Below, one piece after another: positions 363-25,226 of a DNA stretch of 33,940 nucleotides. Numbering within the stretch: the first letter of the stretch is position 1; every line of letters begins with the position of its first letter. A program made the translations under genes and the position numbers. This DNA is from Pelomyxa schiedti (Eukaryota; Protista; Evosea). The stretch lies in the NCBI GenBank assembly GCA_020536535.1, contig JAHLWZ010000981.1, positions 1-33,940 on the forward strand, given 5' to 3'. The notes beneath the pieces are model-generated. The model worked only from the letters and a program-made list of their open reading frames with translations, searched no databases and had not been told where the DNA came from.

Positions 363-1150
363 TGGATGAGAAAACGCTGATTAATGATTTTTAGGGTAAG
401 TCTATTCGAATTGGACCCTTTTTCTCCATTCCCCACGGACTCAACAGTGGACGCTATGGTGGTCTTATTGACCCTGCTGTTCAGGCTGAAGGTCAGCAGT
501 GTAAAAAGCAACCATACACTGATGTTGTCTTATTGCTTGTTTCTGAAGTCATGGAGTGTTTACAAGCTTCTCCTCCTGCTCCATGCTTTTCTCTGCTGTA
601 CTTTTGGAGTAGCTAAGCTATGATGAGTGTTGTTTCTGGTGCACTCTCAGTCCTGGGCATGACTCAGCAGAAGTTGTTTTCAAGATTATCTGGGAGGTGA
701 TTCTTTCTTTGCTGAACTTCAAGTATTGTGACTGAGAGGTGTTGTTGCCCTCTTATGGCAGTGTTGTTGGGTGTACCCTTCTGTTTCGCAATAAACTCCC
801 TCACAAGGAGTCATCCAAGATTCTTGCTGTTTCGGTTTGTTTAGAACCATTGTGGGAATTCAGGAATTCGATAAGCAGTGGTCTTGTCTGAGAAACCAAA
901 GGTGTTTCACCTTCTGGACATCCAGGGTTTGCAACCTCTGTGTCAAATCGCTTCTTAAAAGAATCATGGCTGAAGTGGAGCTTGGGATGTGACCAACAAT
1001 GTGCAGGAGTGTGTGAGCCAGTCAGCCATTTGGTGGTCTGTGCTCTTCAACGATTTTCTTGAACATCAGTTGAAGCTGTACCATCAGAAGGAGATGTGGG
1101 GAATTTGATTGCCGACTTCAAGGCAATGTCTTCGACGTTGACAACCCTGC
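363..1150 (+). pseudogene. Possible degraded protein-coding remnant
   Basis: ATG at 363 and a canonical intron gtaagt...caacag (~396-448), followed by coding-like stretches (GGRYGGLIDPAVQAEGQQCKKQPYTDVVLLLVSEVMECL...) broken by stops and frameshifts. No family recognised. Confidence 0.25.
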
Positions 1151-1487
1151 AAAAAAGATTGCCTTACGGTGCTGTTACGTCCGTATTCCAGTTCCCCGCT
1201 TATTCTTTGAAGTGGCTGAAAATAATCAACAGACCGGAACGCTCTCATTTTCGTTGTTTTTTTTGTTCAGCCAAGTCGGTTCTGTTGATTCTGTTGGAGA
1301 AACGCAGAAGCACAACCACCCCGGGTCTTTTTTTTTTTTGTTTTTTTAACACAGCCAAATGGGCGCGGGGCGTGTCAGCACTAAATTGGCGCCCCGACAC
1401 TCATTTTTTGTAAAGACAAAGGGGGACTTGTAAACAAACAACACACGGCAACAGCACCAAGGCTCACCGTAATCGTAATTTGAGGGC

Positions 1488-2570
1488 ATGGAAAAGAGGT
1501 ACGGTGGTTGGCGGGCTTCAGACATCGATCCGGGTGTTCTAGGCAATGAGATCTACGTGGGCGGTTTGCTGCCGCACTTCACCGCCAATGACGTGGAACG
1601 ATGTTTTCATACTGCTGGGTTCAGGCAATAACCCGTGCCACTAAAAACGGAACGCGTGCCTCGCTTTCTTGGGGTGGTTGTACTCGTTAAATAAAACGGG
1701 CTGAATACGTTATTAACACTCTATTATTGACTCCAATTCCACAAAAGAGGAGTGACCGCGTTCCCACCGATTCCATGCACCGATAACCATGGCACGTTCC
1801 GTTGTAAGCTCCAATTCAACTCATGTGCTGAAGCAAAGTCAGCGTTAGTCAGAGACGATTTCTTCATTAAGCAGAGCACCTGCTCTTGGCACCTCACACT
1901 CAAACCGAAGCCTTGCGTACGCGCCATCCTCGCCAGAATGACGCCGCCTTCGCAGCATCACCGTCAACACCATCAGCAGCCCCAGCACTGCCCCTCGTTC
2001 CAACCACAACCGCCGCCTTCGCATCAAAACCTGCCATTTCAGGACGGGCAGCGCTTCCAGAATGCCCAAGTCCCCCCCCAGCCTAATGCACGTCAAACCC
2101 AGTTCCAGCAGAGTGCAACCAAATCCCAACCGACTTGGCAGCAGCAGTGGCGGCAGTGGCAGCAACAGTGGGAACAGTGGTGCCAGGACCATCACACATC
2201 CCAGTCTGGTTCCTGTGCCTTCCAACAGCAGCCTCAGTCAACCGCATCGTATCCAGTGTCTCTGCTGCCCAGGAACACCTTGAACAGATGGTCCGAATAC
2301 CAACAAGTTAGGGAGTGCGATGGGGTCCCAAAGTTCAACAATGCCGTGGCTCAGGCTCAGGCTCAAGCAAAGCAGGGCCCAGGCTGCTCCGACCCCCCCA
2401 GTTCAAGTGCAGCCAACACACCAACACCAAATCCAGAACTGGCACCAACAACGGCAGCAATACCAAGACAAACAGACCCAAAAACGAAGGTCCAAACAAC
2501 AACAACAACAACCCCAAGCACGGCCACATTACCAGCAGCGCCATATCCAACAACCACAACAACCTCGTAA
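1488..2570 (+). CDS. RRM-domain RNA-binding protein with Q/P-rich low-complexity C-terminus
   Basis: ATG 1488, exon 1 MEKRYGG...NEIYVGGLLPHFTANDVERCF (RNP2-like IYVGGL). A GC-AG intron at 1625-1747 joins in frame to the 1752-2570 ORF (CKLQFNSCAEAKSAL). The true 3' end may be 2622 (see findings). Confidence 0.7.
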
Positions 2571-2765
2571 CTGGCAACTACAAGTCACTCGCTTCCATCA
2601 AGTAAGCAACCACAACAACTAAAAAAATGTGTACCCTTCCTGTATTAATTTTTTTTTCCCCTCTTTCGTTTTTGGTTGGGAATTGGCAACTTGCTGTACT
2701 TCATGATTTGGGTGGCATCAGCTTGTAGTGTTGATGTTCTCCAAGTCAAGAAATTTGCAAGCAGC

Positions 2766-3400
2766 ATGACCGAATTGCTCACTGACGTTCAACAGCAACA
2801 GCAACAGCAACGTGTGCCACGCATTCCCTCATCACTATCATCGCAGCCGTTGCTGTATGTTCCACCACCGCGCTACCAGCAAGCTGCAGCAACAACCTGC
2901 TGCCGCTGTCCCACAATGGCGCTGTGCCAGGGCAGCACACTATTAGAGAGGACTAATCACTATCCGCCGGCTACTACTCCTAATATAATATAATAAGTTC
3001 AGGCCTGACATTCATTTATGTGATTCAGAAGGCCAGCTGTTGTTCATGCCATGTCAATCAAGCAAACATTATCTCCAGTGCAATTATGGCTTCTTTATGT
3101 GCTTGTCAGTTTCAATCATGCGATGTGTGCTGGTTTGTCTCATTCTGCCATTTTGGAACGAAATCCCATCATTTGGGTGTTTGAGTGGCACGCGGTTTTT
3201 CACTTCAAGGCAATCCTTGGGAAATGGAGGATGTTGGTTGATATGGGGATTTCACCATTCTCCAATTCGACTGATACTGGCCTGCCCGCCTTTTTTGCAA
3301 ATTGAAAGGTTCAGTCATCTCGAGTCTCCCTTTAGAACTGTAACATGTAGCCAGGCCTTGGTGCTGAGTTTGCTCTGCACGTGGTCTGCCTTGACTTTGT
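2766..3400 (+). pseudogene. Fragmented hypothetical gene (polyQ N-terminus, then broken frames)
   Basis: MTELLTDVQQQQQQQ... stops at 2993. Short overlapping coding-like ORFs follow at 3040-3402, with no consistent splice solution found. Confidence 0.25.
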
Positions 3401-3605
3401 AATGTAGGTCATGAAGTGTGTCACATTAGTGGAATCAACTTCCGCATCGTTTTGGTATGTTACTGCAACGTACCGGATCTTTGAATGCCACCACCAAACA
3501 TGAGATGCAACGTATGTCACTTATTTAAGACACAAAAGACCCAATTTTTGTTTCGAGCCTTTGCAGCAGGTTGTATAAAGGCATAAGGAGGGTAAAAATG
3601 CATCC

Positions 3606-4382
3606 TTAAAAGACAAACTGGGAAATGATTACAAAGAGCCCCAAAATGATGAGAAGGCTGTGGAGGGCTGCAGACCACTTCTTGAATCTCTTTTCTTTCC
3701 ATTCTCTCATCAAGTAAACCGAAACTGGCAGCAGGAACAAGTAGAACTAAGTCGTGATTAGAGATAAGCTAAAGAGCGAAATTGCATACGAAACCACAAA
3801 CTGCACCAGTATATCTTAACACATCCCCGACTTGGGGGTAGAACACCGCCAATAGATACCCAGCAGCAAGTACAACAAATGAGTACGCCACCACTAGTAG
3901 TATCCCTGGCCATTCCCGCTTCATCACAAAGCGGAATATCTGCCCCCTCATCAACGCGGAAACGAGCGGGAAAATTGATGCCATTTGTAGAACCACTGCT
4001 GCACGTGCTGTCATTCCATATATATCTGTGGCTGGGAAGTAGTCAAGAAAGTCCTGGTACCCTGCAATTATGTCACCAAAGGCAAGGTAACCAACCAGGC
4101 CCACAATGGTGTAGCTCAGTCCTCCCAAACAAAAGCCAATTGCCACATCACGGCGCGCATGTGCTGGATTGGCTTTCGTGGCAACGTTCAGCACGAAATT
4201 GTGAACAAAGAAGGATAGGGACAGAATTCCAGCCAAATATAAAGCACGCTCAGCAATAGGTGTGTAGTGAGGATCAGGTTGCCAGTTGAGGCCACTGCTA
4301 ATGATCATAAAAGTGATGACATAGAGTACCCACACCTGAAATAAGTTAGACCACAGGTTTAGGTATTTGGTTTTTTTTTTTT

Positions 4383-4415
<33 letters not shown>

Positions 4416-5271
4416 GTTGTTTTTTGGTTTATGTCCTCACAATTCCAATGCTGTTGATCTTTACGAAAACTGACCATTGCTTGAGAAGTAAACAGGGAAG
4501 CATGCACACAAAGACATAGAAGGGGACAGAGTATTTTCCCCAGTATTTCGCAGGATCAAATTCACCAGTGATTGATGTCACGATCCCAATGACAAGGGTG
4601 TTAAGGTTCGTTGACATAAGAATGAAATAAATAACGCAAGCTCCGAACAGCACCATGATAGATCCCGCCCACGCCACAATCTTCCCTGGGAGGCCCAGGT
4701 ACTGCTCACAAACGTCGATGAAATCAATGCTGCCTTTTCCCACATTCATAACCAGCATGGCTGTATACAACGTACAAGAGCCCATCACTACCACCACCAG
4801 CAGACCTCCCCATATCCCAGACTGACTGAAACCCCACGGCATTGACAGCAGCGCCGTTCCCATCATTGTGTTCCACACGGAGAATATCGTCAAGAAAGAT
4901 GATTGGTACTTCTTCGGCTGGTCCTTGACCAGCGCCTCCTCATCGTTGATGATGTTTCCGTAACCTCCCGCCTCCTTTTTGATCTCCGGCGGCGATGATG
5001 ACGTTGACGCATACTCGCGAGCACCGTGTGTGTCGGAGAATAGCGGTGTTTTTACGTTGTCGGCATCGGTCGACGATGAGGAGGAAGTGTCATCACTGTA
5101 GACGCCTGGAGATGTGCCTGCTTCGTAGTCCTGCCTGTTTGTCGTCAACCTTGTCTGTGGGGACGGTGGCGGAGGTGGCTTAGATCTTGCAGCATCACTG
5201 TCCGGGTCCTCGTAGTACTCGCTGTTGTCATTGACCACGTAGTCAACGTCCGTGGCGTTTATCGATGACAT
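3606..5271 (-). CDS. SLC38A9: SLC38A9-like amino acid transporter (AAAP/Aa_trans family), 3 exons
   Basis: TM1 signature TIFSVWNTMMGTALLSMPWG, plus LRYTGAVCG and C-terminal LHSLLIILGLFVIISQF. Introns at 4336-4440 (GTGAGG..TTTCAG) and ~3749-3789 (GTATGC..CTTAG). TAA at 3606-3608. Long acidic cytosolic N-tail. Confidence 0.9.
4370..4425. repeat. Poly-T plus (GTT)n microsatellite inside SLC38A9 intron 1
   Basis: Direct reading: T-run followed by about 10 GTT units. Confidence 0.9.
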
Positions 5272-5488
5272 GAGTGACGAGTGATCGGCAGATGCAATAA
5301 TTTATAGAATAATGAGGAATTCTGTTTCGAAAAGGAAGCCTAAATCGCTCGCAGGGGAGTAGTGCCAAGTAACAATCGGTTCCAGAGTCGTTGTTCTGAT
5401 TCCCCTCTCTGGTGTCTGAGGCCTGAGATTGTCTCCGAAGAATTCGTCTCACTGGTTGTTGTGGGGAATTCATCAATCTCGGCGGAAA
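5272..5488. promoter_or_regulatory. Putative bidirectional promoter (217 bp) between the SLC38A9-like and GH38 genes
   Basis: Divergent ATGs at 5271 (-) and 5489 (+), with an AT-rich element (taatttatagaataat) near 5300. Confidence 0.5.
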
Positions 5489-8400
5489 ATGGGAAAGGGC
5501 ACGAGAGTGAGGCTCGTAGCAGTGCTTACAGTTGTGTGCATTATAGGACTTATGGGAATCGGCCAACTTTTTTCCAACGTGCAGGCTGGTCCCATCCACG
5601 TTCACATCGTAAGTACCCTTTTCGTATTTTTTTTCGAAAAAAGGTGTTTTAAAACATACAACAAATAACTCCTGGGTGTTACTTTATTTTTCCCACCATG
5701 TAGATACCCCACTCTCATTGTGACCCTGGGTGGCTGGAAACATTTGAGGGTTATTCACCTGCTGTCAGAAGAATATTGAGTGGAGTTACTAGTGCACTGG
5801 CTTCGAATCCCTCTCGTCGCTTTGTTTGGGCTGAAACGTAAGTGTTGATCAATGAATGGCTTTTGAGCTTCCTTGTGCTTATGAAAACCCAGATCTTTCT
5901 TCCATGCATGGTTCAAAATTCAGAACGAGGACACACAACAAAAAATACGACAACTTATTAATAGTGGTCAATTTGAATTTGTGTCAGGTTTCATTGTTGT
6001 TGTCCCTCTGTGTATTCACTCAGTTTTTTAGGAGGATGGGTTCAAAACGATGAAGCTACTTGCACTCCTGAAAACATCATTGATCAGATGACACAAGGGC
6101 ATAAATGTACTTTCTTTAAAACGGAATAACACAACTGAGTGAAACATAGACCTTTTCGAAAACTTTGGTGTTAAACCCAGAGTGGCCTGGCAAATAGGTA
6201 TTGCCCACCACTACTCCAACAGTACTGACACTGAAAGATCCATTTGGACACTCTTCAATTATCCCTTCACTTTACTCCGAGATGGGTTTTGATATGCTTG
6301 TTATAAACAGAATTCCAATTTCAAGCAAGGTAATCCAAAGCCATTACAGTCACAAAACCAAGACGTGAAAAGGAAAAACTAAGAAACCATCAAGAACTCG
6401 ATTTTTTGTGGGTTGGGTCCGCAGAAAAGAATCAGTCCACATTATTAACACATGTACTGTATAACCACTATTCCGCACCTGTTGGTTTGACCATTACTTT
6501 TTCACTTTTTTTTGTCACCTGCATTATAGGATTTGATTTTGAAGGCATGCGATCTGGTAATGCGAAATCAAGGGCCTCTTCCTTTGTATCCATCATGAAG
6601 GTAAAAAACCCCAATACGGGAAAGAATGACGATTATCCCCCAGCAACAAGCATCAGCATTCAAGTCAAATCACATCGCTGTGCCTTGGGGTGATGACTTT
6701 AAATTCCAAGATACAAACTCTCAGTTCAGTAATATGGATACCGTTATTGGTATGGCTTTCTGTGAACCAAATTTCTGTTCATTTTGAAAAGAGGAGGTCA
6801 ATTCGCAGTATAGTAGTGAAGTTCAAGTGTCTTATTCCACAATGACAGAATACATGCTGGCTCTGTTTTCGGAGAACATACAATTTCCAACATTCACTCA
6901 AGATTTTTTCCCCTACACTGACAATAATGACGATTATTGGACAGTGTGGAGCCAACTTTGTTTCCATGATCTTATCGTCTGACAGGGGTATTATTCCACC
7001 CGCCCTGATCTCAAGCTATTAGTAAGAAAAACTGGAGCAATAAAAAGGGCTGCCGATATCATTTATGCATTTGCCCACCTTGAAGCCGCTATTCATCCAA
7101 GTATGGCATCGAAGTGGTCCGAAACTTTCAACAAACTGAGAGACGCAACAAGGGTAGGAGTTTTACTTTTTTTTTTGGCTTTTTAACTTAGTATATTTTT
7201 CGGTTGTCAGTTACTATCGTTAGTTCAACACCATGGTATCCTTGGATCTATGTTTTTTTTTTTTTCTAACTTATGGAAAGATGCCATTACTGGTACATCA
7301 CGAAGTAAGGTTGTTAGCAGCTATTTTGAAAACCTCCGTAGTGCCTCTTCTGGGTTTGCTGAAGTAAAAATGCTTTGAAATAAAAACGAAAATTAAGAAA
7401 CCAAACTAGATAGCTCAGTCACTTTTACCTATCCTTTTGGATGACGCCGAGTGTGGAGACACTGAAGGTAACATGCCTGTGTTCAATGGCCCGTGGAGAA
7501 TGCATGAAGCCTACTTCGATGGCGAGGAGGTAGTATTTGATGTTACTGATAGCACTGTCACAACGCCTCTTGTTCTGTACAATACACTGGCCTGGGAGAG
7601 ATTGGAATGTGTTAGCATCATCACCAAAAATGAAAATATTTTAATACAAGATGACCTTGGGAACCCAATCCTGGCTCAGGTAACCTCACTTCCGCAAGTG
7701 TACAACCTATAAACTATTCTTTAGATTGTCCCCCTGGCCACTGCAACCGCCAATTCGAAAGTTCGAGTCTATTTTACAGCACACATTCCTGCTCTTGGTT
7801 GCGCAACATACTTCGTTACAACACAAGCGACCCTTCCTGCTACTACCTTTGGATCACGTTTATCAGAAAGTATACTTAAAAAAGCAGGTAAAGTTCTTCT
7901 TTTGCATGTGTTTACTCCAATAAAACTTAGATACTGTTGATTTATCTGTGGAAAATGAGCTGCTGAAGCTTTCACTAACCTCAACTGGTTTGATTGATAC
8001 TATCACATTAAAATCTGAAAGCAAGCAAATCCCCATGAAACAAAGCGTATGATTCCGAACCATTGAACCGATTTCCCAATCCTCGCAGCTTTTAGAATAC
8101 CAAAATTCAAGAGGTGGAGCTTACATTTTTTCTCCCACAGGGGGTGCTGCTGACATTCCAGTCTAACTCCTTTTTGCATGGATTTCTTTAACCTATTTTT
8201 AAAGATCACCAAAAGTCTGGTGCGAGTTATAGAAGGCCCCGTAGTAAATATGGTGCATACCTTTGTGTATGAGGAAGAGGAGGTAGTTTTTGAGCAGCAG
8301 GCCAGGCTGTTTGCCGGCTTGACAGACTTGAGTAACGCTCTCCAAATCAGCCAAGTTGCACATGTTCGAAAGAATAAGGAGTTTGTAACCAGGTAAATTC

Positions 8401-10087
8401 TTTCTGTAAAATCTTCTTCTACCGGTATTATTTAGATTTAGCACTGGACTATCCTCACAGTTTTATACCGACAACGGAATTGAGTTGAGACCCCGCAATC
8501 TTAAAAGTAGCTCTGCTCCTACGAATTACTACCCAGTTGTTTATGCTGCTGCTTTGAGAGAAAAGTCCAGTAGTCGTCCCTTACAACTTGCTGTATGGCG
8601 GGGTGAGGATATACCTCATATTTTCACCTAACCTCTATGCCCAGTTTCTCCCTTCGCAGTCTGTTGGATTTGGGTACATTTCTGAAGGGTAGACGAATCA
8701 TCATCTTTCTTCCCCTAAACAAACACACAGTACCATTGAGTATGTGCTGCACCGGCATTCTTATCATGATGATGGTCGTGGGATGGCTGAAGGAAATAGT
8801 GACTCGACACCAGCTAACGTTCGAATGCTGATAATTCCCAGCCCGTGTGTTACTTCTAGTATGCTAAAATGAAGACTGAACACAAAAAGAATTGACAGCA
8901 TGGACTCCCCAATATTCCACAGGGCTCTCCAAAATACCAACCCTCTCTTGTGTGCAAGTTTTTAAGACTTTTTTTTCAATTAACCAATATTATTAGTTCC
9001 TTCACCTCGAGTACTGTTACTGAAATTGAGAACTATTCTGAATCTTATAAGACAACTTTTAACCCGCTCCGAGATCAACTTCCGGCGAATGTTCACCTAC
9101 TATCACTTCAACCTCTTCAAGAGGATTCTCTTGTAGTTGCCCTAAGGCTACAACACATTGGGGACCAATCCTCCTCAAAAGAGCTTCGATCCCCGGTAGA
9201 TTTATATATGAATTCTCTCTTTGAAGACCACAGAGTGCAACAAGTGCGGCGTACATCCTCAACACTCACCCGGAGTATGTCACTTCCGTTATGTTGGTCT
9301 TGATAACAACACCCACTCACAGATTATACTTCACTGCTCGAAAACCACCTTCGCTGGATGTCTTCCAAAAAAGCAATCTCGGCTACAAACAACGATCTAG
9401 CTTCTTGGTCACATTCCAAATGTATGTAAACATATTCCCGTTTCACCTCCCCACAATAATCTACGAAAAGATGAAACCACGCCTCTTGACACTGCAAGTG
9501 GTCTCGCATTGAGGCTGTATCCCCTTGAGATACACACCTACATCACTACCTTGGACGAAACATGTGAAGCCGAAACAACTGTGACAATCCCAACAACTAC
9601 CACCAATCCACAACCAGAACCAGACAAACAACCCACAACCACTCCAACACCAACACCAGCACAAGCAACAACAATAACAATAGTGGAACCTGCCACAAAA
9701 CAAACAGAGGACAGAGAACCAGAACAGGAAGAACCCCCCAAACAACCACCATTACAAAACAACATCCCACAAGTCACTCCCCCAACCCAACCTCCTCCTA
9801 ATCAGCAACAGCAACAGCAACAACAACAGGCCACCACGGGCACGGGCACGGGCACACCGAGCCGGGCATATACAGGACCAGGGGCCCACGGGCAGGCCCA
9901 GGCACAGCAGCAGGCGCCAGTGGGCAGGCTCTCGCCCCTGTTCATGCTGCTGCCCGTGCTCGCGGTGCTGTGCCTGGCCATGCTGTTCGTGTGCCCTGTG
10001 AGGGGCCGCCACTCGCCCTCCCCGCTGCTGCCCACCACCGCGGCCTCCCCGCGTAGCCGCAGCCCGATCTCAAAGCGCGCTGAGTGA
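5489..10087 (+). CDS. Glycoside hydrolase family 38 alpha-mannosidase with signal peptide, Thr/Pro-rich stalk and C-terminal TM helix; about 20 short introns
   Basis: Spliced motifs VHI|IPHSHCDPGWL, RRFVWAE, GGWVQNDEA, WQI|DPFGHS (catalytic nucleophile), PWGDDF, GYYSTRP, QHH|DAITGT, FYTDNG, NYYP, LHRHL-type motif, LPANVHLLSL, LRLQH. Last exon ends ...LFMLLPVLAVLCLAMLFVC...SKRAE*. Confidence 0.93.
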
Positions 10088-13598: not shown

Positions 13599-14403
13599 GT
13601 GAAAGAGTACTAGTACAAACTGGTTGATTTATACTTGTAACCAAAAGGTATTGGGACATAATGCAGCGAGTAGTGTCGCGGCTGTGGCATTGCACTATCC
13701 TCGAAAATACTCTTTTGTTGTATCATTTGGCGCCTCTGGGACATACAACTCTTCATTGTGTGTAGTTTTTCTGTCCTAGTACTCAGTGATTTATATGCGG
13801 TAGTTATTTTCACCACAACACTCAAAGGTTTTCTTCAGACTTGGTAAAGTGTGCTTGGTAGGCCAGTCATGTGCCTATGCTGTGGGAGATAACACCCATT
13901 GGGCAAAACCCATTGACCTGGACACCACTCTATTCAAGGTACTTTCAGGAAGCAATCAAATCAATACGAACTCACATAAAGCACATTCCCACTTTTCCAA
14001 TTCCATTTTTCAGAACAATATACAACATACTAATGAACCACCACCAAAGGAGGTGATACTAGCTGCAAATACAGCAATACCAGATGAGAGCCTTGTGCAC
14101 AGCAACGTCATTTGTGCCTCAGGTGCAGTATACTCCACGCCCCAAGAAAGGCAGAGCACACACTTCCCACACCAGGCACAGATAGAGGACATGGAGCTGT
14201 ACTCCGTGGCCTGCCTCTGCCGTTCCATCAAAATCCCTCTGGCTGCTGTGAAGTACGTGGCAAACCTGGCTGATGGTGGACAGGGCCCTGCTGTTGCTCG
14301 CTCTGAGATGAGATCAAATATAATTACTTTCAGAGCTTTGGCTGTGACTGTTCTGGTCTGTGTGGTGAATGTTGTAGTAAATTCCCGTGTTCATTCAGTG
14401 TGA
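13599..14403 (+). pseudogene. MTA/SAH nucleosidase (PNP_UDP_1 phosphorylase superfamily)-like gene, frameshifted and lacking a clear 5' end
   Basis: LVQT|GIGT(fs)NAA, VVSFGASG, ICASG, IEDMELYSVACLCRSIKIPLAAVKYVANLAD match the family motifs GIGKVNAA / INxGxAG / VDME..A / S-D-x-A-D. About 2 nt are missing near 13659 and no start codon was found. Confidence 0.7.
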
Positions 14404-14541: not shown

Positions 14542-17500
14542 TCAGTGGAATGAATAAACTGATGTGATAGCATTGAGATCAGCCTGCACAGCAGTGAGTG
14601 CGGCTTCATGAGCTGCGAGTACTGCCTTGAGTTTGGCTATGTGTCCGGCAATGACAACATCTCTGTCCCACATGTGGATAGTGTACACGAGTTGTCTGAC
14701 ACACTCTGGTCTTTGCAGATAGAACACAGGGTAGTCTGCAAGTATTGTCGTGAGCTCCTTGAGTACTCCGTGTGGATTGTGCTCATTGGCGGCTGCTAGA
14801 GCTGCCCTTTTCCTTGCTTTAATTTGTTCCCATGTCAGGTTCTCCAGAGTAGCCCGCTTGTCGATGTGGGAAATAGACTCAACGGCAACACCGGCCGCAG
14901 CAGCAAGTTCTTCAGCTTCTCGTACTTCTCGTTCATACTCGGCAAGTCGTGCTGCATCGAGGCGTTTCTTTTGGTCTGCACGTGCTAATTTCTTGTCATA
15001 CAAGGCAAGCACGTCTTTGAGATTGAGAGCTTTCTTGCTGTCGTAAATCATTTGCTCAGGGATAGAGAGTGTGTTGCGGGTAGAGTCGGTGGTTCCATAG
15101 TTCACATCCAGTGAACGTTTTTTTTCTGCTGCTCTTTTTGCACGGTTTTTGGAAAGCATGAGTTTTCTTTCTGCCCACCGCTCTGCCTTTCTCTCCAATT
15201 TTAGTTGTTTTCTCCTCTCTTCCCTCTCTTCCCACAGCCGAACCCAGAAGCTAGACTTTCTCAACTCAGGGTACTTTTTAGGGTCTTTTCCTTTGAATCG
15301 TGGGTGCCACGTTTTGGTTTTTTGTTCAGTGCCATCATAGTTGAGCACTTTGCGGTGAAGAGGGGCTTCCTAAAGCTGTTTAAGACAAGCAAATGAGTAA
15401 CAGAAAAACAAACAGCAGTTATCTGCTCTGCAGTAAGTCGAAAGATGTTTTCCTCAGTGAAGACCACATAGCTGCAGAAAATAAGTGAGGAAGATATGGC
15501 AGGGACACACATTTTTTTTTTGGCTGCGAGGGCTATGTGAAGCTGCCGTAAAGTCTCCTTGTCCCATAGTGTACGTATAGAGAGAAGAATGATCAAACCA
15601 CTACAATTTTCCAGTAGTCTTTCGTGATACTCCCGCCACTGGTAGGTTACGTAGTCATTGTCAAATAGGCTGACCCCACTCTGGTTCATGCAAGTATATA
15701 CATCTATAACAAGTAATAGTCCAAAAAAAAAAAATGCAAAGAAAATAAACCGTACTGTTTTTCAGAAGTTGCGTCATTAGAGCACAACCAGCTTTTGTAT
15801 CGTACTCTCCTTTGTCATCATGTGTGTGTGCAATGAATAGAAAAGGAGTCCCTCCTGATAACATTGTTTCATATGGCTTGAGAAGTCTTAGTAAACAGGC
15901 TTATGTAGTTCTTTGTTGTTGAGTTTGATATGATTTACCATTTCCGAGGGTCGTGGCATTTTTGGTTGTAAAACATCAGGGAGTGTTCGAACTGAATACA
16001 TATTAGTAAAGCCAAGTGAACTGTTACACACTTCTCTGAAGAAGGGTATTCAGTCTCTTGGTAAGAAGACTCACTGATTGTTTGAATTGTGTGGGCTCAG
16101 AAAAATCATCAATAGGAACGCCATAAATCAGTGACTTAACTTCTGCCATAAGATCCACTTTCTCATACCATATAGGACAGATCTATAAATTTGTGAGAGG
16201 ATTGCTTGAATTAAGATCCAAACCATAATCTGCTGGTGTTTCGCAAGGTGCAGCTCTTTAATACACCAATCAGAGACGGAAGACGTTTTACTGATAATAT
16301 AGACCAGCACTGAGGAGCCCAGTACACCATTGCCAATATCGGACCTCCAGTCACTGCCGGCTGCCAGCCTGGTTGTATCAATCCAGCTTTTTTTGTTTTT
16401 TTAGTGAAACTCACTGTGTGTGACAAGCATACCAACACAGACAATTGCGCTCTAGCTCTTCCTTTAACTTGGTTGCAAACTTCAAGTCGGCATGTGCATA
16501 ACTAAGAAATACTTCTCGGTGTTGAGCAATATCTGTTTTATTTCATTAGCGCCTGAAAAATTGAAGCCACAGCTCTACTTCTCAAACGTTCTCTGGTAGA
16601 CTTGGATGTGCACAAATCAAGAGGGTGTCGGCTTTCGAAATCGAGAATATCAAAAGGAGCAGCATGTGAGAGAAGGAATCTTTATCATTATGGTTAAAAA
16701 GGTTTGGAAGGCTGAAATTGCGTACTCGGCCATGTCTGTATTTTTCGTTATAGCTAAGTGAAGTGCTGTTTGTCCCTCCTTGTTACGCTTGGTTTTGTCA
16801 CAGTAGACCAGCTGCTCCACGCAAGGCATATGGTCATTGAGGATAGCAACGTGAAGTGCCGTGTTACCATCCTTTTATCATGTTTCACCATACTGTATAA
16901 CAAACTGACAAAGTACCTTATTCCTAATATCAGGGTTAGCATTGGCGCTCATCAACATTTTGGTAATAGATGCTTTTCCACTGTTTGCCAGTTAAAGAAA
17001 AGGCAAAAGGGGAAAAAGGTAGTCACCGTAAGGCACAAATATGTAAGGGAGTATTGCCATCTCGAGTTTTTGCTTCCAGCCCAGACACCATAGTGCCATT
17101 CCCCTGTTGGACTCGTCTGCGCGCATTTCTGGCAATCAAGGTTTGTGCTATTTGATCTCTTCCTAATAAGAAAGTCAGCACCAGTACAAATGAGAGAGAT
17201 ACGGAACCAAGAAAAGCTGCCCAATGCAGAGGTGAGAAGTCGTAAGGAGGTCTGTTCTTTCTATAGGAGAGCAGATCAATATCTTTGATGGTACGGAGGA
17301 TTTCATCAACGTTGCCATCCTTTGCGTGTTGTATAGCGGTGTGTTTGCGGGCTGTATTAAAGCAGTTAAACGAGGTTTTATGTAATTACAGTGTATCACC
17401 AATGAGAACTAAGCTGTGAGACCCAAGGGAAAATGAAAAACCCATTGATATGCCACTCAAAAATCTAATGAAGTGTGGCCCTACATGCATAGGTTCAGTT

Positions 17501-20500
17501 ACAAGCTCTTTAAAGTCAGAGGTATCCTCAAAGAAGCTTTCATGAATGGACTTGTCTAATTTGGGAGTAAGAAGAACCCAAACGCAAAACAAATAGTTAC
17601 CTAGAGGAACACATGTCCTATCTGTTGTACTTGTTGCAAAGGACTGTCGTGTTCCCCAAACCCAACAATTTCCGGCAGCAGTGACTGCAACAGTGTGCTG
17701 TTTGCCACATGTGACTTGCTTTACACTAGTACAAGAAATGGCTTTAACTTGACGAGGTTCCATTAGGCAGTGATCTAGAAGGAAAGGTCAAGATGATTAG
17801 AATAAAAAAAAAGGGAGGGAGGACTTCATGAGCAATTACCGGTATCACTATGGCCTAAACGAGATTTGCTGAACTGTCCACAAGTGAATACTTTACCAGA
17901 GGACGACACAATTGCTGTGTGATAGTGGCCACAGCTCACATGGGTAACTTCAGGGGAGGCAATTTTTTTCGATGCTTTGTAATAGAAATAAGGAACCTTA
18001 ATTACTTTTAGACAGTTGTTGGTTTGAGCAATGTGTTATTGGTACTTCAGTTGGTGTATAACAGTCGTCATTGTGACCAAGTCCAAGTTGCCCAAAGGCG
18101 TTGTCTTTTCTGTGTTAGTTGATTTCAAATGATTGTTCATTGACATACATCCCCAAGTGTACAGATCTCCGAGAATGCTTATTCCAGCAGAATGGTGTTG
18201 TCCCATTGAAACGTACTTGGGTTGAAGTTACACTCACCAAAAAAAAAAGCAGAGGCAAGTACTTACCTTTAATTGCAAGGAAGAAGAACCAGGGCAGAGC
18301 ACTGGAAACCAGTAGCAACTATTGTTAGAATCATTGTTTGGAAGACCCAACTGGCCGTGAAGATTGCTTCCCCACACAAATAGTGCACCGGCGCCAGTTA
18401 GAGCGCATGAACTCTCTCCTAATAATCATTGTAAGACATCAGCTCGTGTATTCTTGTTTAGTACCTCCAGCAGTGATGAAGACAACATCTTTGTTATACA
18501 GACTGGAAAGCTTATGGGGACAGGAAGAATCAAGAACGTGCTGACTGCAACCCAAAACACCAGAATCTTTGGAGCCCCAGGTGTACACCTCGGAGTTATG
18601 ATCCAATGCCATACTGTGGCCATTCCCACAAGCGATCATATGCACCGGGCAACCGCGGAAAAACTCTTTGGTTAAATAAAATAACAGCCATAAGTAAAAG
18701 AAATTGTATCTCAGGTAGAAGAACTGCACACCAATAGGAGTTGGAGTTAATCTGTCTACTGTATTTCCATGCCCCAGTTGACCAGCATTTCCCTGACCCC
18801 AAGAAAATATTTCACCGTGGTCTGCACAGGAGTTTAGAGGTGGAGTGTACTTGACAGAAGAGAGACAAACCAGTTAAGGCAAGTGTGTGGTGCCTGCCAC
18901 AGGCAATGATAGAGATCAACTGATCTCTCAGAATTTGTATGAAAATTGGCTCTGCCACAGGTTGTTTGTTCCCAGTCCCAACCTAAACATATTAGAAAGA
19001 ATTAACTAAGCAGGAACCTACCTGGCCACAATCATTTCCACCCCAACCCCTTAAGAGGTTAGTAGAAGACATGAAAGAATTCCAGCACACCACAGGGACC
19101 CTTTACCATGCATTTCACTTAGTCCTCTCAGCCTCATGTATTTTGGAGGGGCTCTAAGCATGTAAGATGTAAAGGATTACAGAAGATAATCATACTTCTC
19201 TAAATCGTATTTGCCCCTTGTTCCACAAATGGAAGTATCTTTTTTTTTTTTTTTTTGATTGAAAGGGATTTGGTGTTAGGCAAAGAGAAAAACTAAAGAG
19301 GCAGGCACAATATTCCATTGATGCAAAATGACTCCAACGTAGTTCTTCAAAAGACTGCTGTGAATAGAACTCCATTGAAGTAATGCACTGAAGAGAGTAA
19401 ATTTTTGGTGGTGGCTTTTGAGGATCAATGCGATCAAACTCGGAGCGTTCTGGGAGAGGCAGTTGCTCAAGTGTGTCTGGAAACTAAGTGACAAATGAGT
19501 TGAGAAGACTAAAAAACAATTAACATCCTACCGATTCTGGTTCATAAGCAGGATAGGTTGGTGAAAAATCCATTTCATTCTCCAGTGTTACAGGAAATAG
19601 GGTTGAGGATGGGGCAACTTGCATGTATCAGGAAACAAAAATAACGAGATCAGGCTTACATTTGGTACCACCACATTCGGTATCACTCTCCTCTTCAATA
19701 TCCTCCAGTTCACTATCTTCACTGTCACTGGCTTCAGCCTCATCCTCTGCAAGCATTTGTTGTCGTAGATCAGCACCCTGTTTTTCTAATTGCCGAGCTG
19801 CATCTTCCCCTGAAACTTGTGGATTTGTTGTATCAGGTCCGCCACTGGTGGTAGGTGGTGGTTCTGTTGTTGTTCTATCTCCCGGCACTTTGGCATCTGG
19901 CATGTCTTCCACAGCCTCAAAGCCCGAGAAAAACAGAGCTTCCTCATCAGCTTCTGACTTGGGAGGTGGCGTGCGTGAAACACGTGAAGTACGTAAAGTT
20001 GGAGTGCGTGAAGGTGGGGTCCTGGAAGGTGGTGGAGTTTTTGAAGACTTTGCAGGTGGGGGAGACCGAGAAGACTGTGGAGTGCGAGACTTTGAAGCCT
20101 GCTTCCGGCCCCGCGGGACTGGTTTTGCTGATTCCTCTTCCTCATCAGCCAAAAATCCTAGAATTTTGAGGGAAACTCTGGTGAGGGAAACTTTATGTTT
20201 GTTGGGTGCCAGGAACCAAAAATTTCATCCAAATCCAGCTCTGGTTCTGGCTCAGGTTCCGGTTCCTCCTCTCCAGTCATGAGATACTTTTCTGAGACAA
20301 ACTCCGCACCAGGAGGCAATTCAACTCGCCACCGTAGCCACCTGTTCGCAATGACATGTGTGACCTTAAGATTGTGAAAACTTGAGAAAGCCAAAAGAAA
20401 AGCAGAAGCAGCCGTTGACAGAAGTCGGTTTTTTTTTTTGTTTGTTTAGTGGTTTTTGGTGCCTTGTTGTTAAGTGCGTAGGTGACGGTTCCACCACGAG

Positions 20501-20672
20501 ATTTGATGGCGGCAATGACAGCGTTTTTTTCAGCAAAGGATCTATCCTCAGACGGCAGTACGTAAACGACTGCATTGTCAAACACGGGGCCGGAGATCTC
20601 CTCCCCTGCTTCCTCCGTCTCATGATCTTCGTTTGTGGCACTGATCTCGTCGTTGTTTTCTTGGTCGCCCAT
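14542..20672 (-). CDS. Multidomain protein: BRCT - acidic/Pro-Ser linker - Nup98 GLEBS-like motif - RCC1 repeats - ankyrin repeats - TIR - degenerate TIR-like - coiled coil (TirA-like)
   Basis: ATG 20672. BRCT: VFDNAVVYV...IKSRGGTVTYALNNK|VTHVI...FVSEKYL. LQCITSMEFYSQQSFEELRW at ~19330-19390. RCC1: IACGRHHTLAL, IACGNGHSMAL...VYTWG, GQLGLGH, VSCGHYHT, VTCGKQHTVAV. ANK: NTPLYN, TSHLC, GNTALHVA. TIR: VFLSYAHAD...WID...SDWCIKELHLA. Second unit: FLFIAHTHDD. Last exon 14542-15348. Not every internal splice junction was verified. Confidence 0.75.
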
Positions 20673-20945: not shown

Positions 20946-23900
20946 ATGGCTGATCGCAGGACACACGAACCACAGGCCGAATCCGTGGGGATGACGGTTT
21001 CGCCAGCAACGGGAACGCCAACTACCACCAGCCTACTATCGACCCCCAATGCACAACAGACAGCCGAACTCAGCCCAACCTGCGATCTCCTCTACCGCAT
21101 AGCCTCACAGTCGGTCAAGAACCTCGTCCAAGAGTACCAGGACACCCAGACCTCGTGCTCCCTCCCGGCCTTCCGCGGCCCAGTGCCAGTGACCGGCCCC
21201 GTGCCCCTCTCCGCCTCCTCCTCCCCTCCCCGCCCGCGGCTGGGCCCCGTCCCGTGGAGCCGCTGGATCCTCCGGGTCGAGGCGGGACTCGTGGGGTGCA
21301 CGGACCGGCTGGTTATGAGCTACTCGCTCACGACGCTCCACTCCCTGCTCTCGCTGCTCCGCGCTCGCCGCAAGTTCCTCGCTTCGCTGCCGCCGCGCCC
21401 GCCGTCGCCTCAGTCCTCGATGCCTCGCCTGCTGCACGGAATTATGGGCGGCGGCGACGACGACGACGAAAACGAAAGTCAGTGCAAGATAGATGACGGG
21501 GTGATGTTGAAATTATGGGAGCTGGTGTCGTGGGTGACTTTGGCATTCAAGACCGGGAGAATGAAAAGCATAATCGTGGCTTCTGGGCAGTGCCTCAGGC
21601 TTTTCGTCCTCGAGGGCCATGCTGCCCAGATTCCAAACTGGCAATGCCGAGTTCCCGAAATAGCAAAGGCAGTCCAAACCGTGTTTACGGAATGCACATC
21701 AATGTCGCTGGTTGTGGCTGTAGCATGCAGGGTCACGGCCGCGTTGCACAAGATACGGGTCATTAGAGCTCTGGTCCCCATCGACGACCTCCTGCCCCAG
21801 ATAGACCGCAAGATTCAAAGCTTCTGCTCTTGGGCTGACTGGGAACGAGAGCCGGGAGCACCAGAAATAGCCGACGCTATGTGCAGGCTTCTGGAGGCTA
21901 AGTATCGCCGTGGGCAGCAGGAACCTTACCAGGTCTCCAGGAGGGATGTGGAGTGGGTCGCAATGCTTTTAAAGATGAACTTACCATTAAGGCTTACTGA
22001 GAAGCTGGTTGTGATAACAAATACTATCGCCACAGATGCTTTGGCTGTTCAAGACAGCCATTTGCTTATTTCGCCAGCTTTGGCATGCTTGAAGCGCCAC
22101 TGTTATTGTGACTGTTATTTAAGCAGCACACCCAAAACATGTGTTACATCTCCAAATCTATGCGTTGCTCTGCATGCCCTTCTTAAGCACGCCAACAATG
22201 CAATTTTTCTGCCATCACAATTGAAGATTTTCCATTCAGTGCTCTCTTGTGGCCTTATGGAAGCCATAGTAGTCGTAATGAATTCTCACCCATCAAATGT
22301 CGATGTGCAAGTAATCGGCTGCCAAATGATACAATTACTACTCAGTGGCTCATATCGCCAATTCTCCACAATCCACCCAGTAGTTCAAGCAGTTCTAAGA
22401 GCTATAGACAGCTGTCCAGACATGGGACCTTTTCAAGATTTTGCTCTATCTGTTCTCCTTGCATTAGTGAATTATCCAAGGTTTGCTTCACATCGAACTG
22501 TTTTGGGTGCTGTACTTCGATTGAAGAATAGAAGTGAAACGGTGTGGGAAGTGATTGCCAAAGCCTCTGAATCTCATCTCGAAGTTAATGACGCAGTTGA
22601 AATTCTGCATGATCTTGTTGCATACCTGAGGCCGATAATACCATTGTCGCCGGAACTGGCAGGGAATGCACTCAAGGTGGTATTACATGTTGTTGGCCAC
22701 ACTGGAGATTCTGCTGCAGCTCTCCAGGATCTATACTGGGTATCTGAAAATTTCAACCCGTTTTCCTATCCTGAAGTGTGCGAGTTTATAGAGCGCATGG
22801 CTGTTTTGAGTGTGCCACACTTGATAGATATGGGTGCTCTGAATATACTTATGCCAGCACTATCGAGTTCAAAAAGCATAGTCCCAGGATGTAATGCTGT
22901 GATGACGCTTTTCCAGGATAACGAAATGAAGGACGCTATTTCCTCGAAAATGAAGCCGGTAGTGATTGCAGCAATAGAAATGTTAGGACCTACTTCAACT
23001 ACAAGCGAAGTATACCACCTATGGCGCACACTTGCAGCCTTGATAACCTCTGGGCGGAGTACCCATTTGTCGAGTGAACTACAACCAGTGGTTACTTGTA
23101 TTTTATCAGGAGAATGTAGCATGCTTTCCCACAGGGTTTACGAACATATTTTATTTTTATCAAAATCTGAGTCCTGTTCTTTCCTGCCTGTGATGCAAAA
23201 CATTCCAGAACTCTTCCCACCTCAATCCTTCTCCAAGGTGGCAGCCGATATAGTAGATCGAATGATCACTTCTCTTGGCAAAGATTGCAGAAATTCTTTT
23301 CCCATACCAGTTCCATTAGTCGAACTCCTTCTTGAATTCGCATTGAGTGTTGACGAGTATATCTCGCAGAGTACATGGAGATCTCTTATACGGTTACTCA
23401 AATTTAAATCTGGGCTCGAAACTGCATTGAAATTGTGTGTAATAGACATACTTCCCCATCTGGCCGAAAATATTGAAAAAAAAGAAAAACGGACGCAGCA
23501 AGAAGCATTGAAAATGCTAGTTCGTACCTTCAATTGTCTTCAGCCGCACAACATTCCCAGAGATACCTTTTTGAGTTACATTCAAGCATTGCTAGAACAG
23601 TTCTCTTATATTCAGAGAGCCTCCTTTGGCGTGGTATGGAGGGGAATTGCCTGCTATTTCACGGGCTCTTCCTCCAGCACCCTGTGGGAAGATGTACTCC
23701 TCGTTATGAAGAAATGTCCGGGCTTGTATAAAGTTCAAATTTTGGCATTGAAGACCTTGCACCACAGTTTAGCCCTGGAACATATCAAAGCAATAAATCC
23801 GTCTATAGAGATCATTTCCGGTACACTCAGCAAAGAAGGCAAACTCTCGAGAAATGTAAGATGGTGTAAGTGGGCTTTCCGTGTAGTCACACAATCACAT

Positions 23901-25226
23901 CCCAGCTATTTGGTCCACAATATTGTAGAACTGGTGCAACGTGAATTTGTTTCCTTTTGCTTTGGAGCACTCTGCCCATCTCAAGCAAAATTATGCTCCT
24001 CGGCACTGAAGACACTCTGTTTCATCTCAAGCATTCCATTTGGCTTTGAGGCAATCAATTCCGTTTATGATGTTGGGAAAATTATCGCAAAGATAAAGAC
24101 TTGTAAACCAAATACTGTAGAATCTCTTCTGTATCTTCTTAAGAGCTCTGTGCATGACACTCCTTCTGCCCAAAGTGCCCAGTCACAACTGGACAAGCTG
24201 CCAATTTTGGAATCATTCGCAATGTACGGCAAGGGGCACAAGCTCTATCTTGATGTTTACACGAAGCTACTTCGATACAGCTCCCCAAGCCCACCCAAAT
24301 TTTTAGCCCCGGCTCCCCCAACCTCCACGGGGGGAGGAGGAAAGATATGCCAATCCCATCATCCCGATATCCTCTGCTTCGCCTGCTACCGCTTTGACCA
24401 ATTCCACTTCTGCATCACCTGCGACGGCCCCTCCTCCTCCCGTAATTACTGCCGCGGCTGCATCGCAGCTTCCCACTACCGGCACGAAATCAGCCCCCCA
24501 ACGCTCCTCGTGGCCTCCTGCTGCTGCGCCCCAGCGGGCGAGACCACCGCCCTGACAATTATAGCCACAGACCCCAATCCCCCTCCCGAGCCAGAAAATC
24601 CCTCCGGCGGCGGCGGCATCGACCTGAGCAAGGAGCTGCAGGCGGCACTCCCGCTGGGATGCAGGCTGGGCCCCGGGCAGTTCAAGGTGCTCCCGCAGCA
24701 GAGCGCCGTGCACGTCCCCGACGCCCGGCGGTACCTGCTGATCAGGGTGCACACGGAGCGCCACTTCGACATCCACAGGGTCGCCCAGGCCCTGCAGACC
24801 GCGGCGGCCGCGGAGCTTCTGCTGTGCGCCGCGAGGTTCCCGCGGGTGGGCAACGGGGGGACCCTGCAGAGCCTCTCCCCGCTCGCGCTGCACAGGATAG
24901 GCCAGTTCCTGTGCCCCAGCCCGGCGCTCCTGCGGCTCCTCGTTTCCCACAGCATGAGAATAATGGAGGGTCCTGGGCCCTGCACGGGAAGCCAGCCGGG
25001 GGCTTCCAAGGTGTCTGCATTGTTGAAGAACCAACCACAGTATACAAAGGGAGTGGAGGTTCCGTGTGAGGCTCATTTGCCTGTGTGCAAACACTGCTGG
25101 ATGCAGTTTGAGAGGTGTCAGTGTCCTGTGGTGGACAACTACTGGTGCAGGAACAGTGGCATGATCATATCTAAGTGTCCTTGTGGCTGTAGACAACGTG
25201 TTTTGGATATACAGTCTGGGTGGTGA
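20946..25226 (+). CDS. Intronless 1426-aa ARM/HEAT-like helical-repeat protein with UBR/B-box-like Cys/His cluster and C-terminal Cys cluster
   Basis: 4.3-kb uninterrupted ORF. ARM-like GLMEAIVVVMNSHPSNVDVQVIGC; CITC...YCRGCIAASHYRH...SCCC at ~24410-24530; terminal CKHC...CQC...CPCGC. Confidence 0.8.
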   Translation: MADRRTHEPQAESVGMTVSPATGTPTTTSLLSTPNAQQTAELSPTCDLLYRIASQSVKNLVQEYQDTQTSCSLPAFRGPVPVTGPVPLSASSSPPRPRLGPVPWSRWILRVEAGLVGCTDRLVMSYSLTTLHSLLSLLRARRKFLASLPPRPPSPQSSMPRLLHGIMGGGDDDDENESQCKIDDGVMLKLWELVSWVTLAFKTGRMKSIIVASGQCLRLFVLEGHAAQIPNWQCRVPEIAKAVQTVFTECTSMSLVVAVACRVTAALHKIRVIRALVPIDDLLPQIDRKIQSFCSWADWEREPGAPEIADAMCRLLEAKYRRGQQEPYQVSRRDVEWVAMLLKMNLPLRLTEKLVVITNTIATDALAVQDSHLLISPALACLKRHCYCDCYLSSTPKTCVTSPNLCVALHALLKHANNAIFLPSQLKIFHSVLSCGLMEAIVVVMNSHPSNVDVQVIGCQMIQLLLSGSYRQFSTIHPVVQAVLRAIDSCPDMGPFQDFALSVLLALVNYPRFASHRTVLGAVLRLKNRSETVWEVIAKASESHLEVNDAVEILHDLVAYLRPIIPLSPELAGNALKVVLHVVGHTGDSAAALQDLYWVSENFNPFSYPEVCEFIERMAVLSVPHLIDMGALNILMPALSSSKSIVPGCNAVMTLFQDNEMKDAISSKMKPVVIAAIEMLGPTSTTSEVYHLWRTLAALITSGRSTHLSSELQPVVTCILSGECSMLSHRVYEHILFLSKSESCSFLPVMQNIPELFPPQSFSKVAADIVDRMITSLGKDCRNSFPIPVPLVELLLEFALSVDEYISQSTWRSLIRLLKFKSGLETALKLCVIDILPHLAENIEKKEKRTQQEALKMLVRTFNCLQPHNIPRDTFLSYIQALLEQFSYIQRASFGVVWRGIACYFTGSSSSTLWEDVLLVMKKCPGLYKVQILALKTLHHSLALEHIKAINPSIEIISGTLSKEGKLSRNVRWCKWAFRVVTQSHPSYLVHNIVELVQREFVSFCFGALCPSQAKLCSSALKTLCFISSIPFGFEAINSVYDVGKIIAKIKTCKPNTVESLLYLLKSSVHDTPSAQSAQSQLDKLPILESFAMYGKGHKLYLDVYTKLLRYSSPSPPKFLAPAPPTSTGGGGKICQSHHPDILCFACYRFDQFHFCITCDGPSSSRNYCRGCIAASHYRHEISPPTLLVASCCCAPAGETTALTIIATDPNPPPEPENPSGGGGIDLSKELQAALPLGCRLGPGQFKVLPQQSAVHVPDARRYLLIRVHTERHFDIHRVAQALQTAAAAELLLCAARFPRVGNGGTLQSLSPLALHRIGQFLCPSPALLRLLVSHSMRIMEGPGPCTGSQPGASKVSALLKNQPQYTKGVEVPCEAHLPVCKHCWMQFERCQCPVVDNYWCRNSGMIISKCPCGCRQRVLDIQSGW

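Follow-up and report, generated by a model that had tools for sequence, protein, structure and literature searches.

TirA has served since 2007 as the reference for "immune-like" TIR proteins in amoebae, and how it is positioned or activated is the question raised by a locus of the anaerobic amoeba Pelomyxa schiedti. This locus occupies the minus strand at 14542-20672 of contig JAHLWZ010000981.1 (GenBank assembly GCA_020536535.1, positions 1 to 33,940, a stretch of 33,940 nucleotides (nt) that is called the window here). A sequence-only reading of this DNA had described a BRCT domain, a Nup98 GLEBS-like motif, an RCC1 propeller, ankyrin repeats, two TIR-like units and a coiled coil on one strand, and had proposed that the BRCT and GLEBS parts were added in this amoeba and could be sensors or decoys. 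The analysis presented here indicates, with high confidence, that the locus is one gene and a member of the TirA family. The new point, a modest lead that follows from sequence comparison, is a conserved GLEBS-like motif that includes the counterparts of two Rae1-contacting glutamates. On balance we consider it reasonably probable that the product is a TirA-family TIR enzyme with a GLEBS-type docking motif. For the question of how TirA is positioned or activated this supplies a short motif with a defined candidate partner (Rae1 or Bub3) that can be mutated at two glutamates, and thus a direct and cheap experimental entry in Dictyostelium.

On the minus strand, 14542-20672 consists of numerous short open stretches separated by tiny gaps; exons were searched singly against Pfam, while whole-protein analyses were performed on the deduced product. 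The latter is GenBank KAH3743549.1 (P0001; 1558 amino acids, aa), entered as "ultraviolet-B receptor UVR8 [Pelomyxa schiedti]", and the last exon (275 aa), compared with protein representatives, is 100% identical to its residues 1284-1558. Transcript evidence was obtained from spliced contigs in three single-cell protist transcriptome runs of one study, which are uninformative on expression level and transcript ends. Their joints read CT..AC on the plus strand, that is GT..AG on the minus strand, with introns of 39-66 nt removed. A 1414-nt spliced contig (18267-20058) carries the RCC1 exons, the GLEBS exon and the acidic linker in frame with eight introns taken out, and another (15290-16291) carries the start of the C-terminal exon together with TIR2 and TIR1. 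When P0001 was mapped back onto the window it fell into 30 blocks, and all junctions observed in RNA were concordant with it, including one within 19239-19308. Furthermore, homologue P0004 (run SRR22746131) displays the entire layout in a single uninterrupted open reading frame (ORF) of 4425 nt. Since the RNA contigs cross many introns, the GenBank model is concordant with them and the layout of P0004 is a single ORF, all of the listed modules are assigned to one gene on one strand. The sequence-only reading had seen no evident gene boundary and had called for RNA to confirm one transcript, and in this regard the contigs do join GLEBS to RCC1 and the TIR exons to the C-terminal exon.

The alternative would be that a BRCT/GLEBS gene and an RCC1-ankyrin-TIR gene are two neighbours that have been mistakenly merged. 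The absence of RNA cover above 20218, and an intron (19618-19659) that is kept in one contig, could be taken in its favour, but in the 1414-nt contig one reading frame continues from the linker through GLEBS into the RCC1 exons, which already contradicts a split between GLEBS and RCC1. Higher up, the 59-nt intron that connects exons 2 and 3 is canonical and of phase 1, the first half of exon 3 lacks an in-frame ATG, and P0004, P0006 and P0008 all run from BRCT through TIR in single ORFs. A merger of two genes is thus regarded as very improbable. The intron just mentioned (42 nt) is retained in one RNA contig (run X2) and removed in another (run X1), which could be intron retention or pre-mRNA. 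Relative to the assembly, RNA contigs from two runs have A for G at position 19563 and G for T at 19903; these differences are probably allelic or strain differences, because a DNA run agrees with the window. No RNA contig was found over 17461-17854.

The first intron (20365-20462) is of the GC..AG type and, at 98 nt, unusually long for this gene. The GenBank model of this intron is favoured because it preserves the Gly-Gly/Thr-His spacing of the BRCT that is common to three homologues. Two other solutions were considered and discarded: a GT donor at 20486 would delete eight residues that are kept in the homologues, and an intron at 20381-20419 (39 nt) breaks the frame.

The family assignment is carried by the first TIR domain, TIR1, which is about 44% identical to that of TirA (Q54HT1), corresponding to some 40 of 90 residues in an ungapped comparison counted by eye, the TirA sequence being that of Table S4 in bioRxiv 10.64898/2026.04.20.719644. 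By sequence comparison this identity is far above that found between unrelated TIR domains. Homologues with the same layout include a transcript of Mastigella eilhardi (P0003), P0004, and P0006 and P0008 from further runs, together with shorter fragments and a Physarum transcript. The earlier suggestion that the core is a TirA relative is therefore upheld, and by its sequence the gene is a TirA-family member rather than a new kind of gene. The preprint lists D. discoideum TirA as a protein of 1336 aa with its TIR at 820-956 and Glu892, and the D. purpureum orthologue (F1A3W2) as one of 1309 aa with its TIR at 769-907 and Glu841, and it reports that the TIR of the latter synthesizes cyclic ADP-ribose (cADPR) in a manner dependent on the catalytic Glu (bioRxiv 10.64898/2026.04.20.719644). 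The legend of its architecture figure names BRCT and RCC1 among the domains drawn (bioRxiv 10.64898/2026.04.20.719644). The layout had thus been described in part, since the polypeptide was already annotated as KAH3743549.1 and two of its domains appear in that legend. A literature search retrieved no paper that joins GLEBS with TIR domains and none that mentions the present motif. The motif itself was assessed in P0001 and its homologues, TirA being known here from its TIR sequence, its lengths and the figure legend.

Several lines of evidence point to a likeness between the motif and the Rae1-binding GLEBS of Nup98. The Pfam family PF21240 (Nup98_GLEBS) scores 20.3 bits on the whole of P0001 and 24.6 bits on the exon alone, against a gathering score of 27, and the match spans only positions 18-36 of the 39 in the profile, as it does in P0003 and P0004. 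Within 101-residue windows around the motif PF21240 was the sole Pfam match (24.6 bits in P0001, 14.7 in P0003 and 15.5 in P0004), while the FG nucleoporins of Pelomyxa itself score 25.4-27.6 bits, with 25.4 in such windows as compared with 24.6 for P0001. When the 52-Mb assembly was scanned in six frames, two matches only were obtained: an FG nucleoporin on contig C284 at 27.6 bits and, at 25.3 bits, this gene. Searches against PDB placed Nup98 peptides bound to Rae1 at the top for the exon (3mmy, 4owr, 7byf and 7vpg, E value about 0.5), and a profile of five family segments returned five matches, all of them Nup98 GLEBS chains (E 0.044). Searched against the genome, the family motif profile matched only itself and a Nup98 with FG repeats and an autoprotease domain (C179). 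The Ser-Phe-Glu-Glu-x-Arg core is invariant in five homologues, and its Glu-Glu pair aligns with the Nup98 peptide in 3mmy. It would be the counterpart of Nup98 E201/E202, which form conserved salt bridges to Rae1 (PMC3783196). Each of these statistics is marginal on its own; because they combine with conservation and reciprocity, a chance likeness appears unlikely, and the GLEBS-like motif of the sequence-only reading is retained.

Compared with the Rae1/Gle2-binding GLEBS of Nup98 and Nup116, the motif shares the C-terminal arm, both Rae1-contacting glutamates and a score close to that of the organism's own nucleoporin GLEBS; it differs in that the N-terminal hairpin arm is unmatched in P0001, the score stays below the gathering threshold and docking to Rae1 is a prediction. 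P0001 is not itself a nucleoporin, since its Pfam scan shows neither FG repeats nor a C-terminal autoprotease domain, both of which occur in the nucleoporin genes on C284 and C179. The former (L001, G000:C284:1-1999, at 149-1189 on the minus strand) is an FG-repeat nucleoporin gene with GLEBS, whose assembled sequence is broken by a stretch of N, and the latter (L007, G000:C179:33500-38500, at about 680-3440 on the minus strand) is an FG-repeat nucleoporin gene with both GLEBS and the Nup98 autoprotease domain.

It could be argued that the motif serves the protein itself, by folding onto its own seven-blade RCC1-like propeller or onto some other partner as a latch or structural element, in which case it would not recruit Rae1 or Bub3 and the Nup98 likeness would merely reflect a shared way of lying over a propeller face. 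In each of the five homologues the motif lies shortly before the propeller (about 45 residues in P0001), which would fit this, as would the sub-threshold match that covers only the C-terminal arm of the Nup98 motif. On the other hand, the spacing to the propeller varies across homologues from a few dozen to more than 100 residues, and the invariant residues are precisely those that define a Nup98-type GLEBS, both salt-bridge glutamates included. An internal latch is therefore considered unlikely, although it deserves serious attention. Binding of the motif to Rae1 or Bub3, as predicted from its conserved residues, is put forward tentatively, at somewhat less than an even chance. A generic WD40 family search of the Pelomyxa genome gave 42 matches and did not single out Rae1.

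The enzymatic part of the reading rests on TIR1, a domain better conserved than any other part of the family. Its Trp1077 and Glu1081 do not vary among nine homologues, and in profile alignments they coincide with the W-x-x-x-E of AbTir and with the Glu-containing motif of a plant TIR, as the sequence-only reading had expected in assigning a catalytic Glu to this domain. The NADase AbTir is also the best match of the TIR1 profile in PDB (E 1.7e-8). In an AlphaFold model of residues 1000-1295 the predicted local distance difference test score (pLDDT) is about 90 across TIR1. A fold search with this model retrieved the Hydra TRR-2 TIR (Z 16.4) and the SARM1 TIR (Z 15.9, root-mean-square deviation 2.4 over 126 residues), as well as C. 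elegans TIR-1, MyD88 and plant TIR domains, the matches lying at Z 14-16 overall, so that TIR1 has a canonical TIR fold as modelled. The domain is, by these sequence criteria, probably active as an enzyme, a view held with moderate confidence.

Two paralogues bear on this point, both with an RCC1-ankyrin-TIR-TIR-coiled coil layout: L004 (G000:C1138:1-10000, about 4750-9330, plus strand) and L008 (G000:C829:32000-41000, about 3220-7320, plus strand). They begin directly at the propeller, without BRCT or GLEBS, and in place of the Trp and Glu of TIR1 one of them has Arg/His and the other Arg/Gln. Among the three Pelomyxa RCC1-ankyrin-TIR-TIR paralogues, only the gene in the window has the catalytic residues together with the N-terminal modules, and this joint retention suggests that the two features act together. 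Dictyostelium TirE (DDB_G0278125) combines RCC1 repeats with a tandem pair of diverged TIR domains, both of them invisible to Pfam (PMC13142454). Its RCC1 and tandem TIR layout corresponds to the C-terminal two thirds of the Pelomyxa protein, but its diverged TIR domains resemble those of the C1138 and C829 paralogues rather than those of this gene; from their sequences, the two paralogues look like members of the TirE side and the window gene like one of the TirA side.

It is also conceivable that the TIR domains work without enzymatic activity, as adaptors or scaffolds, in the way that was classically assumed for those of animals, with the conserved Glu playing a structural role. D. discoideum TirA has no recorded product in the preprint table, and two paralogues have been retained in the Pelomyxa genome despite the loss of Trp and Glu. 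However, both residues are strictly invariant in nine homologues of the BRCT/GLEBS type and lost in the paralogues, the D. purpureum orthologue is active, and the closest sequence relatives in PDB are NADase TIR domains such as AbTir; a purely adaptor role for these domains is accordingly judged improbable.

The second TIR-like unit, TIR2, is confirmed as such, although it lacks any Pfam match: in a comparison with the TIR1 profile (hhalign) the probability was 91.7% (E 7.7e-7), with Gln1253 opposite Glu1081, and the AlphaFold model shows the alternating strand-helix topology. No residue is conserved at this position across the family, and this, together with the Gln, suggests that TIR2 is degenerate and probably non-catalytic. 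Neither the C-terminal exon nor P0002 matched a Pfam family, and the terminal module of this exon (about 75 aa), which is conserved in P0002-P0004, P0006 and P0008, gave no usable match in the ESM Atlas. P0002 and P0005, which have 250-251 aa and come from Logan and ENA assemblies, are stand-alone proteins homologous to the C-terminal exon only (E 1.6e-19, 37% identity), which indicates that the coiled coil and terminal module also exist elsewhere as an independent protein.

At the N-terminus, the BRCT claimed by the sequence-only reading stood in the homologues and less well in Pelomyxa. In P0001 the Pfam models score below their cutoffs (BRCT_2 22 bits with a cutoff of 27.3, BRCT 19.4 bits with a cutoff of 21.3), and on single exon stretches only the N-terminal half was matched (E 0.067). 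At the equivalent position, P0004 (31.8 bits) and P0006 (41.5 bits) exceed the cutoff, and the GG-x10-TH spacing of P0001 agrees with that of the homologues; the domain thus probably belongs to the family as a whole and has degenerated in Pelomyxa. BRCT and GLEBS occupy the same places in P0003, P0004, P0006 and P0008, which come from other organisms, and this indicates that both are ancestral to the protein family, contrary to the proposal that they were added in this amoeba.

By analogy with the D. purpureum orthologue, TIR1 would cleave or cyclise nicotinamide adenine dinucleotide (NAD+), most likely to cADPR, in a reaction that probably requires self-association of TIR domains, while TIR2 and the C-terminal coiled-coil module could serve as non-catalytic scaffolds. 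The BRCT-like, GLEBS-like, RCC1-like propeller and ankyrin modules would position or regulate the enzyme. In this regard, the GLEBS-like motif most likely docks on the top face of a WD40 propeller of the Rae1/Gle2 type (or Bub3 type) through its two invariant glutamates, and such docking would link the enzyme to the machinery of mRNA export or of the nuclear pore, or to that of the mitotic checkpoint.

A number of observations weigh against the picture of a TirA-family enzyme with a GLEBS-type docking motif. No RNA contig covers the 5' part of the gene above 20218, in which the first two introns and the BRCT exons lie. The BRCT of P0001 is sub-threshold and its AlphaFold model (mean pLDDT 46.7) is too poor to judge the fold. 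The GLEBS match stays below the gathering score and is confined to profile positions 18-36 of 39, with PDB E values of 0.04-0.5 that are marginal, and P0006 and P0008 carry a degenerate form of the motif, with another residue in place of the Leu that follows Glu-Glu. Finally, the TIR of D. discoideum TirA is given no "yes" for a product in Table S4 (bioRxiv 10.64898/2026.04.20.719644).

A more far-reaching proposal, in the spirit of the sequence-only reading, sees in BRCT and the GLEBS-like motif the integrated sensors or decoys of a guard-type immune receptor, through which DNA damage or pathogen interference with Rae1-Nup98 export would lead to TIR signalling. The Rae1-Nup98 interface would be a pathogen target in animals, judging from Rae1-Nup98 GLEBS structures (PDB 4owr, 7byf and 7vpg) among which are complexes with viral proteins. 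TIR1 is probably catalytic, and Dictyostelium TirA is required for defence-like functions (PMC5758549). However, these modules belong to the conserved features of the family, their core being invariant, and are neither recently integrated nor fast-evolving; Rae1 is not known as a target of any Pelomyxa pathogen, and the Pelomyxa BRCT is degenerate. Integrated sensors or decoys are therefore decidedly improbable, and the idea that DNA damage or a disturbed mRNA export is coupled to TIR signalling is speculation by analogy. Only slightly better placed, and still a long shot, is the broader notion that TirA-family TIR enzymes are physically coupled to Rae1/Gle2 or Bub3 via GLEBS, such that an NAD+-derived signal (e.g. 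cADPR) would be made at, or controlled by, the nuclear-pore or export machinery, possibly as a guard that fires when this machinery is disturbed.

With regard to known systems, the Pelomyxa protein resembles Dictyostelium TirA and its D. purpureum orthologue in being a large soluble amoebozoan TIR protein whose TIR lies about 400 residues from the C-terminus. It differs in that genetic evidence links Dictyostelium TirA to feeding on or defence against bacteria and to extracellular traps, whereas the Pelomyxa protein is known from its sequence. SARM1, AbTir and plant TIR proteins share the TIR fold (Z 14-16) and the conserved Trp and Glu in the same helix, but they carry SAM/ARM, NB-ARC/LRR or bacterial sensor domains, none of which is present here. 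The closest solved relatives of the propeller by sequence are the RCC1-like domains of UVR8, HERC1/2 and RPGR, UVR8 being the best (E 1e-84). UVR8 is a stand-alone plant propeller, whereas the Pelomyxa propeller (aa 407-748) is one part of a 1558-aa TIR protein with BRCT-like and ankyrin parts, in a non-photosynthetic amoeba. The GenBank name is thus a misleading transfer from the best hit; "UVR8" is wrong, and TirA-like TIR domain protein would be an apt name.

The features of the gene are collected in Table 1. The propeller and ankyrin repeats of the sequence-only reading are both strongly matched: in P0001 the WD40_RLD match extends over positions 2-334 of the 363 in the profile, and Pfam recognises six RCC1 repeats. 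Searched exon by exon, Pfam places the RCC1 repeats at 17389-19102, the ankyrin repeats at 16653-17385 and TIR_2 on two exons at 16414-16542 and 16131-16400. The linker matched no Pfam family and is disordered.

Table 1. Features of the TirA-like gene of Pelomyxa schiedti, with positions in the window.
Feature	Residues (P0001)	Position	Strand	Remarks
Whole coding region	1558 aa	14542-20672	minus	ATG 20672-20670, stop 14544-14542, 30 coding blocks
BRCT-like domain	29-101	20272-20588	minus	split by intron 20365-20462; C-terminal half weak or degenerate
Acidic, Ser/Thr-Pro-rich low-complexity linker	~102-314	19532-20271	minus	composition of P0001; RNA cover 19532-20145
Nup98-type GLEBS-like motif	346-364	19334-19390	minus	S-F-E-E-x-R core; PF21240 24.6 bits, E 2.5e-5
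Seven-blade RCC1-like propeller	407-748	17620-19095	minus	WD40_RLD 260 bits, RCC1 240 bits
Ankyrin repeats	~848-1000	16589-17229	minus	Ank_2 112 bits, Ank 88 bits (Pfam, P0001, aa 848-977)
TIR1, putative catalytic	1008-1145	15981-16521	minus	TIR_2 71 bits (aa 1011-1100)
TIR1 W-x-x-x-E motif	Trp1077, Glu1081	16254-16268	minus	Glu1081 codon 16254-16256; codon checked
TIR2, divergent	1158-1283	15414-15944	minus	Gln1253 (codon 15543-15545) at catalytic Glu position
C-terminal exon	1284-1558	14545-15369	minus	basic coiled-coil-like stretch, then conserved ~75-aa module (14545-14763)

Elsewhere in the genome, a third kind of TIR gene (L003, G000:C776:6000-15999, at 7933-8580 on the plus strand) is the top match of PF13676 (57.6 bits); the match lies in a single open stretch of 216 aa, preceded by exons that are seemingly unrelated to RCC1 or ankyrin. 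Within the window, the TirA-like gene lies head-to-head with an intronless ORF of 1426 aa (20946-25226, plus strand), the two start codons being 273 nt apart. The only Pfam hint in this ORF is a weak match to the LRRK2 ARM repeats (E 6.7e-4), its C-terminus is rich in Cys and His, and the GC content is up to 0.60 at both of its ends. Downstream of the TirA-like gene, and convergent with it, a 184-aa open stretch (13849-14403, plus strand) finds a match in the C-terminal portion of PNP_UDP_1, the nucleoside phosphorylase superfamily (E 8.7e-8), and is probably one exon of an adjoining gene.

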